A DNA stretch of 63,932 nucleotides, filler included, from Octopus bimaculoides (GCF_001194135.2; 5 parts of 4 records of this genome joined end to end with filler, not necessarily neighbours in it); one strand, 5' to 3'. Counted from the whole stretch's first letter, positions 16,717 to 24,811 are shown. Notes: a model not told the origin generated them from the letters alone. Numbers and translations: made by a program.

Positions 16717-17623
16717 GCACATATCTATATATGTGTATGTGTATANNNNNNNNNNNNNNNNNNNNNNNNNNNNNNNNNNNNNNNNNNNNNNNNNNNNNNN
16801 NNNNNNNNNNNNNNNNNNNNNNNNNNNNNNNNNNNNNNNNNNNNNNNNNNNNNNNNNNNNNNNNNNNNNNNNNNNNNNNNNNNNNNNNNNNNNNNNNNNN
16901 NNNNNNNNNNNNNNNNNNNNNNNNNNNNNNNNNNNNNNNNNNNNNNNNNNNNNNNNNNNNNNNNNNNNNNNNNNNNNNNNNNNNNNNNNNNNNNNNNNNN
17001 NNNNNNNNNNNNNNNNNNNNNNNNNNNNNNNNNNNNNNNNNNNNNNNNNNNNNNNNNNNNNNNNNNNNNNNNNNNNNNNNNNNNNNNNNNNNNNNNNNNN
17101 NNNNNNNNNNNNNNNNNNNNNNNNNNNNNNNNNNNNNNNNNNNNNNNNNNNNNNNNNNNNNNNNNNNNNNNNNNNNNNNNNNNNNNNNNNNNNNNNNNNN
17201 NNNNNNNNNNNNNNNNNNNNNNNNNNNNNNNNNNNNNNNNNNNNNNNNNNNNNNNNNNNNNNNNNNNNNNNNNNNNNNNNNNNNNNNNNNNNNNNNNNNN
17301 NNNNNNNNNNNNNNNNNNNNNNNNNNNNNNNNNNNNNNNNNNNNNNNNNNNNNNNNNNNNNNNNNNNNNNNNNNNNNNNNNNNNNNNNNNNNNNNNNNNN
17401 NNNNNNNNNNNNNNNNNNNNNNNNNNNNNNNNNNNNNNNNNNNNNNNNNNNNNNNNNNNNNNNNNNNNNNNNNNNNNNNNNNNNNNNNNNNNNNNNNNNN
17501 NNNNNNNNNNNNNNNNNNNNNNNNNNNNNNNNNNNNNNNNNNNNNNNNNNNNNNNNNNNNNNNNNNNNNNNNNNNNNNNNNNNNNNNNNNNNNNNNNNNN
17601 NNNNNNNNNNNNNNNNNNNNNNN

Positions 17624-17833: not shown

Positions 17834-17839
17834 TTTATT
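17834..17839 (-). promoter_or_regulatory. Candidate polyadenylation signal of gene A
   Basis: AATAAA on the minus strand about 150 nt downstream of the gene A stop codon. Confidence 0.45.
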
Positions 17840-17992: not shown

Positions 17993-18027
17993 TTACAGCA
18001 GAGATAGTTGCATTGCAATCATTAGCT
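17993..18027 (-). CDS. Gene A, terminal coding exon (E)LMIAMQLSLL*
   Basis: Acceptor ttttttgtattttttttag|AG. The phase-1 junction G|AG creates the Glu12 of EF loop 2, followed by a hydrophobic exit helix and TAA. Confidence 0.8.
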
Positions 18028-18139
18028 CTAAAAAAAATACAAAAAACAAAGCGACAATTAGTTGACAATTACACAGAATAATTGGTAATTTAATCAAGAT
18101 CTAATTATCTATTTTCATCATACTCTAGGTGGAGTTTTA

Positions 18140-18860
18140 TTTTCCATTGTGTCTATTGACTTATTGTAAACAGTCCCTGCTTGAAACTAGATCCTATTGT
18201 ACATCGTAGCTCGTCTCCTCAAGACCTTATTGTACTCTGTGTTTATTGTAAACCGATTATGTTGCCCAAAGTGCAATAGTTACATTTGTCCTATTGTTAT
18301 ACACTACCCATTATAAACTGGGCCTATTGTACACCACCAATTATTCATTGTTTATCATTTATTGACTCTAGCGTACACTGTACAATAGGCACATTTGATA
18401 ATAGGCACATTTGATAATAGGCACATTTACTCTTTAACCTATTATACTATTTCCTATTGTACTCTGAACTTATTGTTTTCTGGTTTATACATCGTAATGG
18501 TTGTGCTCTGTACCTATTGTACACTATGCCTACAGCACAACGTCTTTTGGCTTATTGTCTATCCTATTTATTGTAAACTAGGCCTATTGTTCACTAGACC
18601 TATTATCCACTGTGCCGATGGTGTTCCGAACTATTATACAATTTTTACAATTATGCAATGTAGCTATTATATGGATTGTTTAGCTTTTAAGCAATGTGGC
18701 TATTATACAACCTAGTTATTGTACAATGTAACAATAACAATCTAGCTATTTTTAACAGCTATAATAAAATGTAGCTATTATAATGTGTAGTTATTAGTAA
18801 GCAGTGTGAACAATTAAACATGTTATTACGCAATGTTGCTGTTATACAATTAAGTAAATA
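18140..18860. repeat. Cryptic minisatellite-like array (CTATTGT / TGTAGCTATT motifs) in the last intron of gene A
   Basis: More than a dozen TATTGT cores at irregular short spacing, plus a 16-bp ataggcacatttgata tandem near 18386-18428. Confidence 0.6.
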
Positions 18861-19059
18861 TACATTATGGCCAGGATACAATATCACATGACCACATGAT
18901 CGACAAGACTATCGGGTGTTGTTGCATATCGCTGGTCACAATGCGCTTTGCATCTTTTTTTTTTTTTTTTTTTTTAGATTTCGAATGATGCCACTCAGCT
19001 GGCAACGTTAGCGGATCAACACTTACCGCTGATCGGAAGACAATTCCGTCACAGTGTGA

Positions 19060-19200
19060 CCCATTTACAACTCAGTGGGCTGGAATAATGCAGGATGAAG
19101 TGTTTTACTCAAGAACACAACGCGTCGATCGGTCCGGGAATCGAACTCACGACCTTGCGATTTTGAATGCAACACCCTAACCACTAAGTCACGCGCCTTC
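19060..19200 (-). mobile_element. tRNA-headed SINE (family C), partial
   Basis: Minus strand tagtggttagggtgttgcattc...ggtcgtgagttcgattccc...gtgttcttgagtaaaacact. Related copies at 53705 and 60340. Confidence 0.7.
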
Positions 19201-19323
19201 ACAGTATGCAACATAGCAATTATTAGACAATGTAGCAATTTTACAAAACGAGGCAACATTACAATGTAGCTATTAAGCAATAAAGCAATTCAGCAAGGAT
19301 GTTATTGTGTATGATAAACTCAC

Positions 19324-19597
19324 CATCAACCGAGAAGAAGGAGTCTGAATTTGTGTCAATGGAAGCGAATTTCTCCAATAATTGGTTAATTTCTTTGTCG
19401 GTGTAGGATAATGCCTCGAAGAATCCCCACAGTTCGTCTCTGCTCAGTTTACCATCTCTGTTGAGGTCAAAGATACTAAGAAACATCTCAGCATCTTCTC
19501 TTGAACCCCACATCGCTTCAGCTTCTTCTTCGTATTCTTCATCCTCTTCTCCCTCATCTTCTTCTCTTCTCGCCTCTCTTACACTACGAGATGCTTG
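19324..19597 (-). CDS. Gene A, middle coding exon: RSVR/RR sites, acidic tract, two EF-hands
   Basis: Acceptor cattttcag|CAA; 274 nt (91 codons plus 1 nt); donor GATG|gtgagt. EF loop 1 DLNRDGKLSRDE is canonical; loop 2 DTNSDSFFSVD(E) is completed by the next exon. Confidence 0.9.
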
Positions 19598-19607
19598 CTG
19601 AAAATGC

Positions 19608-19650
<43 letters not shown>

Positions 19651-19729
19651 GCAGTGTACATATATACACACGCGCACACACACATAAATTATATCCTTAT
19701 ATGTCGTTTATCTTTTATCGCTTATTTGT

Positions 19730-20135
19730 TTTAGTTATTAGACTGTGGCCATGCTGGAGCACCGCTTTGAGGAATTTTTAGTTGAATCAACTGACCTCAG
19801 TCCTTTTATAAGCCTGCTACTTACGCTTTCGGTCCCGTCTGTCGAACCGTTAAGTTTCGGGGTTGTAAGCTCACCAACACCAGTTGTCAAACGGTGGTAA
19901 GGGACAAACATACACAAAAAACATACACATACACGCACACTCATATATGTATGTATTACGTACGTATGTATGTATGTATATAGGACGGGCTTCTTCCAGT
20001 TTCCATCTACCAAATCCACTCTCAGATGCTATTGTAGACGACACTTGCCTATGGCGCCACGCAGTGGAACTGAACCCGGGACCATGTGGTTGGGAATCAA
20101 ACTTCTTAGTAAACATCCACTCCTTCGCCTATCCA
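19730..20135 (-). mobile_element. tRNA-headed SINE (family B) with internal microsatellite
   Basis: Head ...cccaaccacatggtcccgggttcagttccactgcg, core ggcaagtgtc...ggatttggtagatggaaactgg, tail ctccagcatggccacagtc. Matches 45660-46045. Confidence 0.8.
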
Positions 20136-21069
20136 CATAACCACGCCTGCGCTTGTATGTATATGTACAAATTGCATAAATGTATGCTCATAGATGTACG
20201 TATATACATATTTCATATCCGTGTAGAATACAATGATCTGCCCGAAAATTTTAATTCTAAATCCCTGAAGTCAACAAGGGAGCGAGCCCCAAAGTGGTGT
20301 CTTCATCTGTTAGAAATAGCAAACAAATCTTCCTGAAATAAAGTCTATTATCGTAAAAAAAAATTTTTTTAAAGAAAGAAAGAAACGGAAGTATTTGTTA
20401 TTTTTGGTAAAAAAACAATACACCGAAATAAGGTCAGACTAAGGGCCTAAGAATAAATAACAACAGTATCAATAACGAAAAGCCAAAAGAAGATTTGAAC
20501 CTAAAATCTGTGGATTGGTAAGTGTAATATCGTATCCGCTAGGCCATCTCACCTTTACACCTTTCGAGAAAACAAAACAAGACATACGGTTCTTTAGCGA
20601 CAAAAGTTTACAGAATTCTAAATCCCATGAAATTTGAGCTAAAGTAAATAGGAAGATGGAGACGAGGCGGGCGACGCTCCCTTGTCTAAATAATTCAGTG
20701 TCGTGTCAGATTTGGTAAACGGAAACATTCTGCCAATATAGAATTTATCTGCGACTTTATTTGATCTAGACACTGGCACGTCACGTCATATTACGAAAGA
20801 TGTTGCTTCCAAATCCAACAACAAGAGACAACCAAAACGGAGATTGGTAATGGAGATAAGAAGACGATTTAGTTTTAAGATGTTACTGGAAATGTCTGTG
20901 TGTCATTTCCGTGTGTGGAACACATCACGAAACTTTACCAAATAATCTACATAATATTATATATCATCTACATATCTTAATATCTACTACACAATATAGG
21001 CAATATTTGATGTACACAGACATATATAGTCATAACAGTATATATATATATATATATATNNNNNNNNNN

Positions 21070-21880
21070 TACCTTGTCCTTATTCTTAGTGCAAGTTTTG
21101 AAGAGTGCAGTTCTATTTTAACAGTTATTTTTTCAAAGCTATAATGAAAGTGACAAAGGAGCATATTCAGCATATCTTGCTTTATGAGTTCAATAAAGGA
21201 AACAACACAACTGAAAGTGTCAGCAATTTCAATGCAGTATATGGGGATCGGACAATAAGTGAAAGCCAGTGTCAACGGTGGTTCCAGATATTCCGAGCCG
21301 GAAACTACAGCCTGGAAGATGAACCTCGTCCTGGATGATCTGTAGAGCTCGATGAGGACATCCTGCAAAACCTGGTGGAAAAGAATCCCATCGTAACTGT
21401 TGAGGAACTAGCAGAGAAGCTTGGATTTGGTCATTCAACCAGTCATCGACACGTGCGCTAGAAGAAAAACGATCATCTTTGATTTCAAGACGAAAGGTGT
21501 TCTTCCATGAGGATAATGCTCGGCCACACACAGCGAGGATGACATTCCAAAAGCTGGAGCAGTTTGAATGGGAAACGATGCCCCACCCACCATATTCGGC
21601 GGACATTGCTCCATCTGATCATCATTTATTCCGCAGTCTTCAAAATCATTTAGACGGAAAAAATATGAATTTTGTAGACGAGGTCAGAACAGTACTGGAG
21701 GAGTATTTTTCGTCACCGACAAGTGAATTTTAGAAGAGGGGCCTTGTAAGTCTACCAGATAGAGGGAAGAGCATTGCAGAAAATGGAGGAGAGTATATGC
21801 TAGATTAAAAAAGGACTTTGTTTATCTTAATTTTGAAAAATAAAGGAAAAGAAAAGCGCATTAATTATGGGATGACCCAA
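21070..21880 (+). mobile_element. Internally deleted mariner (DD34D) transposon in intron of gene A
   Basis: MKVTKEHIQHILLYEFNKG...QCQRWFQIFRAGNYSLEDEPRPG and HEDNARPH...HPPYSADIAPSD (34 spacing). Right TIR ...attatgggatgacccaa + TA. Confidence 0.9.
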
Positions 21881-21949
21881 TATATATATATATATTTCGT
21901 TTTGGGATTTGGTTTGCAAGACTTTTTATGTGATTTCGTGTGTTGAAGC

Positions 21950-22126
21950 ATATTCTGTTGTGTCTGGGGAGAGTCATTTTCTTATTGTGCCTTAAAATTT
22001 AACACACTCACCGGTAAAATTTCCACTCATTTCTTATTTTTATTTTCCTAAAATAAAATTTTACTGATGAGTGTGTTAAATTTTAAGGCACAATAAGAAA
22101 ATGACTCTCCCCAGACAACAGAATAT
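21950..22126. repeat. ~70-bp inverted repeat with AT-rich spacer
   Basis: atattctgttg(tg)tctggggagagtcattttcttattgtgccttaaaatttaacacactca at 21950-22022, mirrored at 22056-22126. Confidence 0.85.
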
Positions 22127-22746
22127 ATATATATATATATACAAATAAGACGATATATACACCCAAGACAATATATACACTTAAGGACTGTAAATTTGGT
22201 ATAAGGTCTGAAATGTAGAGATGAGAATGATTGATTATGTCGACCCCGGTAATTCACCGGTGTTTTTTTTTGGGGGGGGGGCGTGATTTAAGAAGGATAA
22301 GAAGTAAATTTGGTCTCGGCAGAATTTGAACTTAGAACATAAAGACCTGGAACAAATATCACGACGCATTTTGTACCTAACGACTGAGCATTCATGAACA
22401 GAAATTTTGAGGAGAGGGATTAGTATTTTATTTTATTTTAAAGGCAATGTTGGCTTCCGCCAAATTTGAACTTCACCATTCTCAAACGTTTCTGCTGATC
22501 CGTCTAGCTTTGCATAGGAAAAGACCAGACATTAGGGCGGAGGGCAACATTGATAAAATAAACTTCAATACTTCAGTGGTACATTAATCTATCGACCCTA
22601 GGCGAATGAAAAGAAAATAAATAAACCTAGGCGAAGTTCGAACTCAGAACGTTCTCAGCCACAACTAAATACCTCAAGGCATTTTGTCTGCGGTTCCAAC
22701 GATTTTCCTAACGTACAAAATACTAAAAATAGATGTATCAACTTAC

Positions 22747-22875
22747 CATGTGATCATGCACATTCTTGAAAACGTCCAAACGTTTGCGAAGTCCAGTAGA
22801 CATAGCTTCAGTTTCGATCCACACGAGTGACAGGGTGCAGACAAGGGCCAATGTAAACAGAAAGAATTTAGGCAT
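22747..22875 (-). CDS. Gene A, first coding exon: signal peptide plus propeptide (MPKFFLFTLALVCTLSLVWIETEA-MSTGLRKRLDVFKNVHDHM)
   Basis: Acceptor ttttctttttcctccag|AA-ATG (exon starts 22877). 43 open codons with a hydrophobic h-region and T-E-A cleavage motif. Donor ATG|gtaagt, phase 0, matching the next exon. Confidence 0.85.
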
Positions 22876-23074
22876 TTCTGGAGGAAAAAGAAAACATTTC
22901 GCTAAACAGTGATTGCATGACTCAAGTCACGTGACTTTGTGGATTTGTAGTTGGTACATATTGTACAGAAATTAGGTATAAATGTATGGATGGTGTATCT
23001 AGATACACATGTACACACACACACACGTACACACACATGCACACATACACAAACACATACATGTATGTATGTAT

Positions 23075-23113
<39 letters not shown>

Positions 23114-24811
23114 TGTATGTATATATGAATGTATCTTACTGAAGTTCAGTGCATTCATAAAGTTTCTCACTGGCGAAGTGACGACAAACGCAGACTCAAT
23201 GGAGAAGGATTTTTCCGATGTTTTTATTCGTCTGTGTATGCATATATGTGAGCATCAGTGTGTGTATGTGTGTAAGTGTCAGTGTGTATGAGTGAAAGAA
23301 TGAAAACGCATTTTATGTACATGTGTATGTATTTATATATANNNNNNNNNNNNNNNNNNNNNNNNNNNNNNNNNNNNNNNNNNNNNNNNNNNNNNNNNNN
23401 NNNNNNNNNNNNNNNNNNNNNNNNNNNNNNNNNNNNNNNNNNNNNNNNNNNNNNNNNNNNNNNNNNNNNNNNNNNNNNNNNNNNNNNNNNNNNNNNNNNN
23501 NNNNNNNNNNNNNNNNNNNNNNNNNNNNNNNNNNNNNNNNNNNNNNNNNNNNNNNNNNNNNNNNNNNNNNNNNNNNNNNNNNNNNNNNNNNNNNNNNNNN
23601 NNNNNNNNNNNNNNNNNNNNNNNNNNNNNNNNNNNNNNNNNNNNNNNNNNNNNNNNNNNNNNNNNNNNNNNNNNNNNNNNNNNNNNNNNNNNNNNNNNNN
23701 NNNNNNNNNNNNNNNNNNNNNNNNNNNNNNNNNNNNNNNNNNNNNNNNNNNNNNNNNNNNNNNNNNNNNNNNNNNNNNNNNNNNNNNNNNNNNNNNNNNN
23801 NNNNNNNNNNNNNNNNNNNNNNNNNNNNNNNNNNNNNNNNNNNNNNNNNNNNNNNNNNNNNNNNNNNNNNNNNNNNNNNNNNNNNNNNNNNNNNNNNNNN
23901 NNNNNNNNNNNNNNNNNNNNNNNNNNNNNNNNNNNNNNNNNNNNNNNNNNNNNNNNNNNNNNNNNNNNNNNNNNNNNNNNNNNNNNNNNNNNNNNNNNNN
24001 NNNNNNNNNNNNNNNNNNNNNNNNNNNNNNNNNNNNNNNNNNNNNNNNNNNNNNNNNNNNNNNNNNNNNNNNNNNNNNNNNNNNNNNNNNNNNNNNNNNN
24101 NNGGTGGTGGGGCTGTTGATTGTGATGCTGTTTCTGTACAGCTTCGATATTGTTATTGTAGGGCTGTTGTTGTTGTTGTTGTTGTTCTCGTCGGCATCGT
24201 CGTCGTGGTCCTTGTACGACAGCTCACCTTTTGTACCTTCGACTTCTGCAACAGTTTGTCAATTGTCACCTGTCATTTTAATCACAACACCTTCTTAATT
24301 AGTCCTTCCTTAATCTAACGATCCGTTAATTCCTAAATATTCCTCGCTTTTCCTCTGTGTGTGTGTGTGCTTTTGTGTGTGTGTTTGTGTGTGTGTTTGT
24401 ACGTGTGTGTGCGTGTGTATGTGCGTGTGCGTGTGTGTGTTTGTGTGTGCGTTATTTCGTTCAGTAAAAATTTCTGCGGGGGCGGCAGGGAGCGGGGAGC
24501 AAGTTGTCTCTATTTATATATGTGTGATTGTGTGTATACATACATATATATGTGTGTGTGGATGTGTGTATGTCTGTATGTGTATGTGTGTTGTAGGAAG
24601 AAGTCCATACATGTGTACGTGCGTGAAATTAGCTACATATCCATCCACGACCGAATGTATGTATATATACATGTATATGTGTATGGCTGAATGTGTGTAT
24701 ATATATNNNNNNNNNNTATATATGTGTTTGTATGTATGTGTGAATACATCTGTATGCATGTTCTGTGTTGAAGTCTATACATGTGTGTGTGTGCGTGCAT
24801 GTGTTTATGTA

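Follow-up and report, generated by a model that had tools for sequence, protein, structure and literature searches.

A coleoid-restricted gene of Octopus bimaculoides for a small acidic EF-hand protein with a predicted signal peptide

We analyzed a stretch of DNA from the genome of Octopus bimaculoides (GCF_001194135.2), 63,932 nucleotides in length and joined with filler from five parts of four records, which is referred to as the window. On its minus strand lies the gene LOC106874349. The reading that we consider likely as a whole is that of an annotated, intact, coleoid-restricted gene for a 145-amino acid acidic Ca2+-binding protein of the secretory-pathway lumen or the extracellular space, built from a signal peptide, a basic helix, an acidic tract, and a pair of EF-hands. 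The exon structure of the gene is conserved between species, its coding sequence is under purifying selection, and its product belongs to the EF-hand proteins. From features of the sequence we infer secretion, Ca2+ binding, processing, and a biological role, each of which is taken up below.

Results

Three minus-strand exons (22875-22747, 19597-19324, and 18027-17993; 129 + 274 + 35 nt, phases 0/1/2) were joined into a frame of 438 nt, which translates into 145 amino acids followed by TAA. The introns between them are of the GT-AG type, with the donors ATG/GTAAGT and ATG/GTGAGT and, each after a pyrimidine run, the acceptors TTTTCAG/C and TTTTTTTTAG/A (the slash marks the point of splicing or, further below, of cleavage). 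Exons, splice sites, phases, and protein sequence were reproduced exactly as in the original prediction. The prediction had also used the last junction as an internal check of the frame, and this check was confirmed. Position 12 of the second EF-hand loop, Glu135, is encoded by a split codon, G/AG, across the junction of exons 2 and 3. The check is valid because the unspliced frame reads past exon 2 into Gly and then into a stop codon.

The 5' boundary of the gene had been placed at 22877. This position is the first base of the exon, straight after the acceptor ccAG/AAATG; the ATG itself lies at 22875, and a leader exon is found further upstream. The acceptor, in the form ccagaaATG, also occurs in Octopus vulgaris and Argonauta. 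The leader exon ends at 23140 (..ATGAATGCACTGAACTTCA/GT), 262 nt 5' of the ATG exon, and its beginning is hidden by an N gap that starts at 23342. An older RefSeq model (P0152, 152 amino acids) begins with MNALNFK in front of MPK, and the corresponding codons stand at 23158-23140, before the GT donor. They match the window once, where no match is expected by chance. The stretch of leader exon, in-frame ATG, and donor shows 88% conservation in O. vulgaris. Counting this exon, the gene has four exons, of which three are coding. The upstream in-frame ATG (MNALNFK-) was used by the older RefSeq model and dropped in the current one. Either ATG leaves a signal-peptide-like N-terminus.

Intron 1 holds an assembly gap (an N run at 21060-21069) that adjoins an (AT)n run, and a missing exon in this gap was considered as a candidate. 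In O. vulgaris, which aligns on both sides and is continuous there, the place is filled by microsatellite and some 180 nt of unique sequence, with no exon. In Sepia mRNA, the end of exon 1 runs directly into exon 2 across the equivalent junction. A missing exon is ruled out by these two observations. The gap being intronic, the reading frame is therefore unaffected.

The original prediction had presented the gene as hidden, which does not hold. The protein is identical (100%, full length) to RefSeq XP_014777540.2 and UniProt A0A0L8GXB7, the "uncharacterized protein LOC106874349" of O. bimaculoides, and the gene is therefore annotated. LOC106874349 is placed on chromosome record CM046620.1 of GCA_001194135.2, where it spans the same 4883 nt; an example peptide of its protein is EDAEMFLSIFDLNR. 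Models are also annotated in Octopus sinensis, O. vulgaris, and Argonauta. That of O. sinensis in RefSeq (148 amino acids, full length) includes the signal-peptide codons, and its product is near-identical to the O. vulgaris protein, with which it falls into the same 90% cluster. The O. vulgaris model CAI9737236.1 starts at an internal Met, with the signal-peptide codons in frame directly upstream (9929-10000 of locus L003). The Argonauta hians model is partial and translates the leader exon (10001-10072 of locus L002). Both models are thus flawed in their annotation.

Relatives were sought in two large protein searches. A word-indexed search covered 5.8 billion proteins, with a single protein query and then a four-species profile query. 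An exhaustive HMMER search covered 1.84 billion cluster representatives. Besides O. bimaculoides itself, the searches together retrieved only four specific relatives: the proteins of O. vulgaris and A. hians, a contig from SRR19578112, and a genomic contig from ERR3431203. The remaining matches of both searches were generic EF-hand matches, mostly to proteins with several EF-hand stretches. The SRR19578112 contig is an RNA-seq contig of 913 nt with a contiguous, intronless open reading frame (ORF) of 141 amino acids for the orthologue. A transcriptome paper on Sepia esculenta (PMC10141105) lists SRR19578112 in its data statement. Since its frame is uninterrupted, the contig represents a spliced transcript of the orthologue. 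The ERR3431203 contig is very close to the Sepia sequence. That the gene is lineage-restricted and corresponds to no named gene, as had been predicted, was thus borne out by these searches: they led to an uncharacterized RefSeq gene with orthologues in octopods and Sepia and to no characterized conserved family. The family is so far known only from coleoid cephalopods (octopuses, argonauts, and cuttlefish).

O. vulgaris, Argonauta, and a decapodiform (Sepia-like) genomic contig share the positions and phases of the introns with O. bimaculoides, and an intact ORF is present in at least four species. The ratio of nonsynonymous to synonymous substitution rates (dN/dS) was 0.25 between O. bimaculoides and O. 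vulgaris, at a dS of 0.17. For O. bimaculoides and Argonauta it was about 0.12, with dS saturated. In a DNA alignment with Argonauta, exon 2 was the only part of the gene still aligning (74%), and the introns did not align. Because of these dN/dS values of 0.12-0.25 and the conservation with Argonauta of an exon only, LOC106874349 is a functional protein-coding gene under purifying selection.

The presence of two EF-hands, at residues 76-141 in the C-terminal part of the protein, was confirmed with Pfam. Four families scored above their curated cut-offs (EF-hand_6, 31.9/25; EF-hand_7, 31.7/30; EF-hand_1, 27.0/25.4; EF-hand_5, 26.3/25.9), and all four members of the gene family match Pfam EF-hand profiles above the cut-offs. 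The 12-residue loop of EF1 carries its oxygen ligands at positions 1, 3, 5, 9, and 12 and Gly at position 6, and it satisfies PROSITE PS00018. It is the sole PROSITE EF-hand match in the six frames of the piece of sequence that carries the gene, compared with none in 50 shuffles. In EF2, DTNSDSFFSVDE, the ligand positions 1, 3, 5, 9, and 12 are occupied by D, N, D, S, and E, position 6 by Ser, and position 8 by Phe; all four species share the Ser of position 6. The EF pair of the AlphaFold2 model reached block-mean predicted local distance difference test (pLDDT) values of 65-83. The N-terminal helix was of low confidence, and the acidic tract, at a pLDDT below 50, was disordered. Foldseek matches to this model were all EF-hand pairs, none of them at E <= 0.001. 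This fold search and the sequence search of the PDB returned generic EF-hand pairs only, such as those of sarcoplasmic Ca-binding protein, polcalcins, CHP1, centrin, and snail caltubin.

At the N-terminus, the layout of a signal peptide was recognized by rule: MPK, the uncharged core FFLFTLALVCTLSLVWI, and ETEA/M, with Ala24 at -1 and Thr at -3 of the predicted cleavage site. The core has a mean Kyte-Doolittle value of 2.4, and the protein has no second hydrophobic segment. In four species this n/h/c layout is kept though the sequence of the segment changes fast (dN 0.43-1.2), in agreement with the signal peptide that had been proposed. The mature protein contains no Cys and no N-x-S/T sequon, and its isoelectric point (pI) is about 4.3 (4.1-4.6 across the family). 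Its C-terminus, QLSLL in octopods and KGYL in Sepia, is not of the KDEL type. An acidic product of about 90-120 amino acids, as had been anticipated, is supported.

Residues 25-54 are basic (net about +5). An amphipathic helix is predicted there at low confidence (about residues 27-54), and its hydrophobic positions are conserved. The dN of this segment is 0.25, compared with 0.43 for the signal peptide and 0.44 for the acidic tract. The helix is the most constrained of the three and is therefore no mere spacer. The basic motifs of the precursor had been read as convertase sites, and this proposal survived in part. R47 and R50 of the RxxR motif are invariant in four species. The RR pair at residues 53-54, directly after RxxR, is present in three octopods and absent in Sepia; the RKR motif reads RKH in Argonauta and is likewise absent in Sepia. 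Convertase processing is plausible as judged from these partly conserved motifs. The same split was seen for the proposed sulfation of Tyr65 in the EEYEE setting of the polyacidic tract: this Tyr in an acidic context is found in three octopods and not in Sepia, so that tyrosine sulfation would be octopod-only. Directly after the tract, the sequence W-G-S-x-E (residues 73-77; 19496-19510, minus strand) is invariant in four species, as is Trp100. W-G-S-x-E fits the S-x-E motif of the Golgi casein kinase Fam20C and may be phosphorylated there.

The protein was compared with known EF-hand families of the secretory pathway and the extracellular space. MCFD2 was attractive as an orthologue for its size and layout (146 compared with 145 amino acids, a signal peptide, a flexible or disordered N-terminus, a terminal EF pair, and no KDEL in either protein). 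However, MCFD2 has a long linker between its EF-hands, no polyacidic tract, and no RxxR. In hhalign the probability was 2.1% for human MCFD2 and 2.2% for the vertebrate MCFD2 profile A4, with only the EF pair aligned, at 17-18% identity, and orthology was rejected on this profile comparison. The best 120 MCFD2 relatives listed came from mammals, birds, reptiles, and fish, compared with coleoids alone for the family described here as so far known.

The extracellular Ca2+-binding (EC) domain of SPARC/BM-40 resembles the octopus protein, as predicted, in being extracellular and acidic and in having an EF pair behind a long amphipathic helix. In SPARC this helix packs onto the EF pair. By eye, a resemblance in LRxRD-Phi-KNV was noted. 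The Pfam family SPARC_Ca_bdg gave sub-threshold matches in three of the four members, from the helix through EF2, with a best E of 3.5e-4; the window protein scored 16.1 bits against a cut-off of 22. However, the EF-hands of SPARC are disulfide-bonded, and the mature octopus protein has neither Cys nor a follistatin-like domain. With an hhalign probability of 3.5% over 24 columns against the human SPARC EC domain, and with no cysteines, this relationship was rejected.

The CREC proteins (Cab45, calumenin, and reticulocalbin) and the nucleobindins are secretory-pathway EF-hand proteins. One of them, NUCB2, is cut by prohormone convertases into an N-terminal peptide and an EF-hand-bearing remainder. 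Unlike the octopus protein with its two EF-hands, these proteins have 300-460 amino acids, extra domains or six EF-hands, and often an HDEL-type ending. Neither the PDB sequence search nor the exhaustive protein search showed a specific similarity to them. With two EF-hands and its C-terminus (QLSLL or KGYL), the octopus protein does not fall within CREC.

A further likeness is found within the molluscs. An extracellular EF-hand protein of Pinctada fucata has been linked to shell formation (Huang et al. 2007, as cited in PMC13425148). Neither large search retrieved it as a specific relative, and no direct sequence comparison was made. An EF-hand behind a signal peptide had been regarded as unusual. 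Its rarity was overstated, as MCFD2, the SPARC family, the pearl-oyster protein, the CREC proteins, and the nucleobindins are of an established kind. The octopus protein is probably a lineage-restricted EF-hand protein of the secretory pathway or extracellular space, outside any named subfamily.

The features of the locus and its surroundings are collected in Table 1. In the NCBI annotation, LOC106874349 has no neighboring gene closer than 10 kb in either direction. ARAGORN found no tRNAs and Rfam no families in the piece, and the tRNA-derived short interspersed nuclear element (SINE)-like sequence of intron 2 was called by neither. Repeats consist of microsatellites and N runs, and the other ORFs are of low complexity or are transposase remnants. 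The Pfam scan gave no match for the 84-amino acid mariner ORF or for the 216-amino acid Tc1-like ORF. Assembly gaps include those at 12803-13034, 16746-17623, 23342-24102, 27496-27873, 29468-30432, 31409-31777, 32683-33634, and 34303-35229, nearly all of them flanked by microsatellites of the (AT)n or (TG)n type. About one-fifth of the piece is unread, and small features are therefore possible there.

Table 1. Positions of the parts of LOC106874349 and of nearby elements, counted from the first letter of the window
Feature	Position	Strand	Basis or remark
Leader exon, 3' end	23140..23158	-	Upstream ATG (MNALNF-), donor A/GTAAGA; older RefSeq model, O. vulgaris conservation
Leader intron, 262 nt	22878..23139	-	Mostly (AT)n and (TG)n; ends ccAG
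Coding exon 1, residues 1-43	22747..22877	-	tblastn: orthologous exon in O. vulgaris (L003) and Argonauta (L002) loci
Signal-peptide-like segment, residues 1-24	22804..22875	-	MPK + 17-residue uncharged core + ETEA
Intron 1	19598..22746	-	Holds assembly gap 21060-21069 and mariner transposase remnant
Coding exon 2, residues 44-134 and first base of codon 135	19324..19597	-	Same boundaries in decapodiform contig L005
R47-S-V-R50, RxxR, candidate furin-type site	19577..19588	-	Invariant in four species
Polyacidic tract, residues 55-72, net about -13, contains Tyr65	19511..19564	-	Disordered in AlphaFold2 model
EF-hand loop 1, DLNRDGKLSRDE, canonical	19433..19468	-	PROSITE PS00018 match in four species
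EF-hand loop 2, DTNSDSFFSVD + E	19324..19357, completed by AG at 18027-18026	-	Ligand positions all present
Intron 2, phase 1	18028..19323	-	Holds tRNA-derived SINE-like element
Coding exon 3	17993..18027	-	Two last bases of Glu135, LMIAMQLSLL, TAA
AATAAA, likely polyadenylation signal	17834..17839	-	154 nt 3' of stop codon
Mariner transposase remnant, 84-amino acid ORF, intron 1	21479..21733	+	SETMAR/Mos1 structures, E = 7e-18 to 3e-14
Tc1/Sleeping-Beauty-like transposase remnant, 216-amino acid ORF, downstream of gene	11501..12151	+	SB100X, E = 6.5e-8
tRNA-derived SINE-like element (GGCGCGTGACTTAGTGGTTAGGG...GGTCGTGAGTTCGATTCCCGGACC), then A run, intron 2	~18975..19200	-	Sequence

Discussion

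According to the reading that we favor, the protein would be translocated into the endoplasmic reticulum (ER). Because it would enter the ER and has no KDEL/HDEL-type ending, its site of action would be the secretory lumen or the extracellular space. There it would serve as a small, very acidic Ca2+-binding protein, with EF1 as a standard Ca2+ site and EF2 as a probable one. The basic helix may be freed by a furin-type cut at RxxR (or, in octopods, at RR), or it may be a ligand of the EF pair. Nothing points to a toxin.

Several observations weigh against this reading. The signal peptide and the cleavage sites were judged by simple rules, and a hydrophobic core of 17 residues lies at the upper end of the range for signal peptides. 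Sepia shares neither the dibasic sites nor Tyr65. EF2, with Ser and Phe at positions 6 and 8, fails PS00018. The AlphaFold2 model, with a mean pLDDT of 65 from an alignment of 4 sequences, is of moderate confidence only. No paper mentioning the gene was found when the literature was searched by LOC identifiers, by UniProt and RefSeq accessions, and by related topics.

Among the alternatives, the protein may tentatively be seen as a proprotein, prohormone- or granin-like in the manner of NUCB2/nesfatin, that a furin- or prohormone convertase-type enzyme cuts after R50 and/or R54. The products would be a basic peptide of about 26-30 residues with an L-x-x-Phi-K-N-Phi-H-D-x-M core and a very acidic EF-hand part of about 91-95 amino acids. 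A basic segment followed by an acidic one is a layout typical of processed precursors. The invariance of RxxR in four species, the RR next to it in three octopods, and the constraint on the N-terminal segment (dN 0.25) are consistent with such processing. However, RFAR is the sole basic motif of Sepia, RKR is replaced by RKH in Argonauta, and the RR site has Glu at P4, an unfavorable residue for furin. It is equally conceivable that the invariant Arg residues make structural contacts with the acidic EF domain. We also considered a more far-reaching proposal, which we regard as unlikely. It sees the gene as a coleoid invention, a granin/nesfatin-like precursor from which convertases would release a basic signaling peptide (again the L-x-x-Phi-K-N-Phi-H-D-x-M segment), with the acidic EF part serving as a module for Ca2+-dependent sorting or packaging in dense-core vesicles or as a component of the statolith matrix.

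With similarly low probability, the protein could remain inside the cell as a resident luminal adaptor, a Ca2+-dependent helper of ER/Golgi cargo sorting like MCFD2 or Cab45. Its size and domain order are nearly those of human MCFD2 (sequence checked against the PDB), it has no retention motif, as is the case for MCFD2, and each genome among the relatives retrieved has a single copy. However, the MCFD2 profile comparison gave a probability of 2%, and what aligned was the generic EF pair alone. No MCFD2 was among the matches listed in the exhaustive search and the PDB sequence search, and a housekeeping role would predict conservation beyond the coleoids.

An assignment to biomineral matrix appears rather improbable. 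The protein would then be an acidic extracellular Ca2+ binder of a structure common to coleoids, such as statolith, stylet, or cuttlebone, comparable to the EF-hand protein of the pearl oyster shell. The pI of 4.1-4.6, the polyacidic tract, and the occurrence in both octopods and Sepia agree with this, as may the invariant WGS-x-E, which fits the S-x-E motif of the Golgi kinase. EF-hand domains are described as recurrent in lophotrochozoan shell proteomes in PMC13425148. However, acidity alone is weak evidence, and a term search found no mention of "EF hand" in the text covered of a preprint on the Argonaut eggcase matrix.

A type II membrane protein, in which an uncleaved signal anchor would tether the EF pair facing the lumen or the outside, is very unlikely. 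The uncharged core of 17 residues in octopods is long for a signal peptide, but in Sepia the core has only 14 residues. In addition, the n-region is short, with one or two positive charges, a polar c-region follows with small residues at -3 and -1 (T-E-A/M), and a total length of 22-24 residues is what cleaved signal peptides usually have. Finally, a prediction artefact or pseudogene, either a chance assembly of exons or a dead copy in a locus full of gaps and repeats, is scarcely credible and was rejected on the dN/dS of 0.12-0.25 and the conserved structure, with an ORF intact in at least four species at identical intron positions, a spliced Sepia mRNA, and conservation with Argonauta confined to an exon.

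The favored reading, an acidic EF-hand protein of the secretory pathway or the extracellular space, concerns a gene that is already annotated yet uncharacterized, and its general significance is modest. It defines a small orphan family, so far of octopuses, argonauts, and cuttlefish, and adds to the short list of secretory and extracellular EF-hand proteins. If the tissue of expression is the statocyst, a gland, or neurosecretory cells, the gene could provide a handle on cephalopod-specific calcium handling or peptide signaling.

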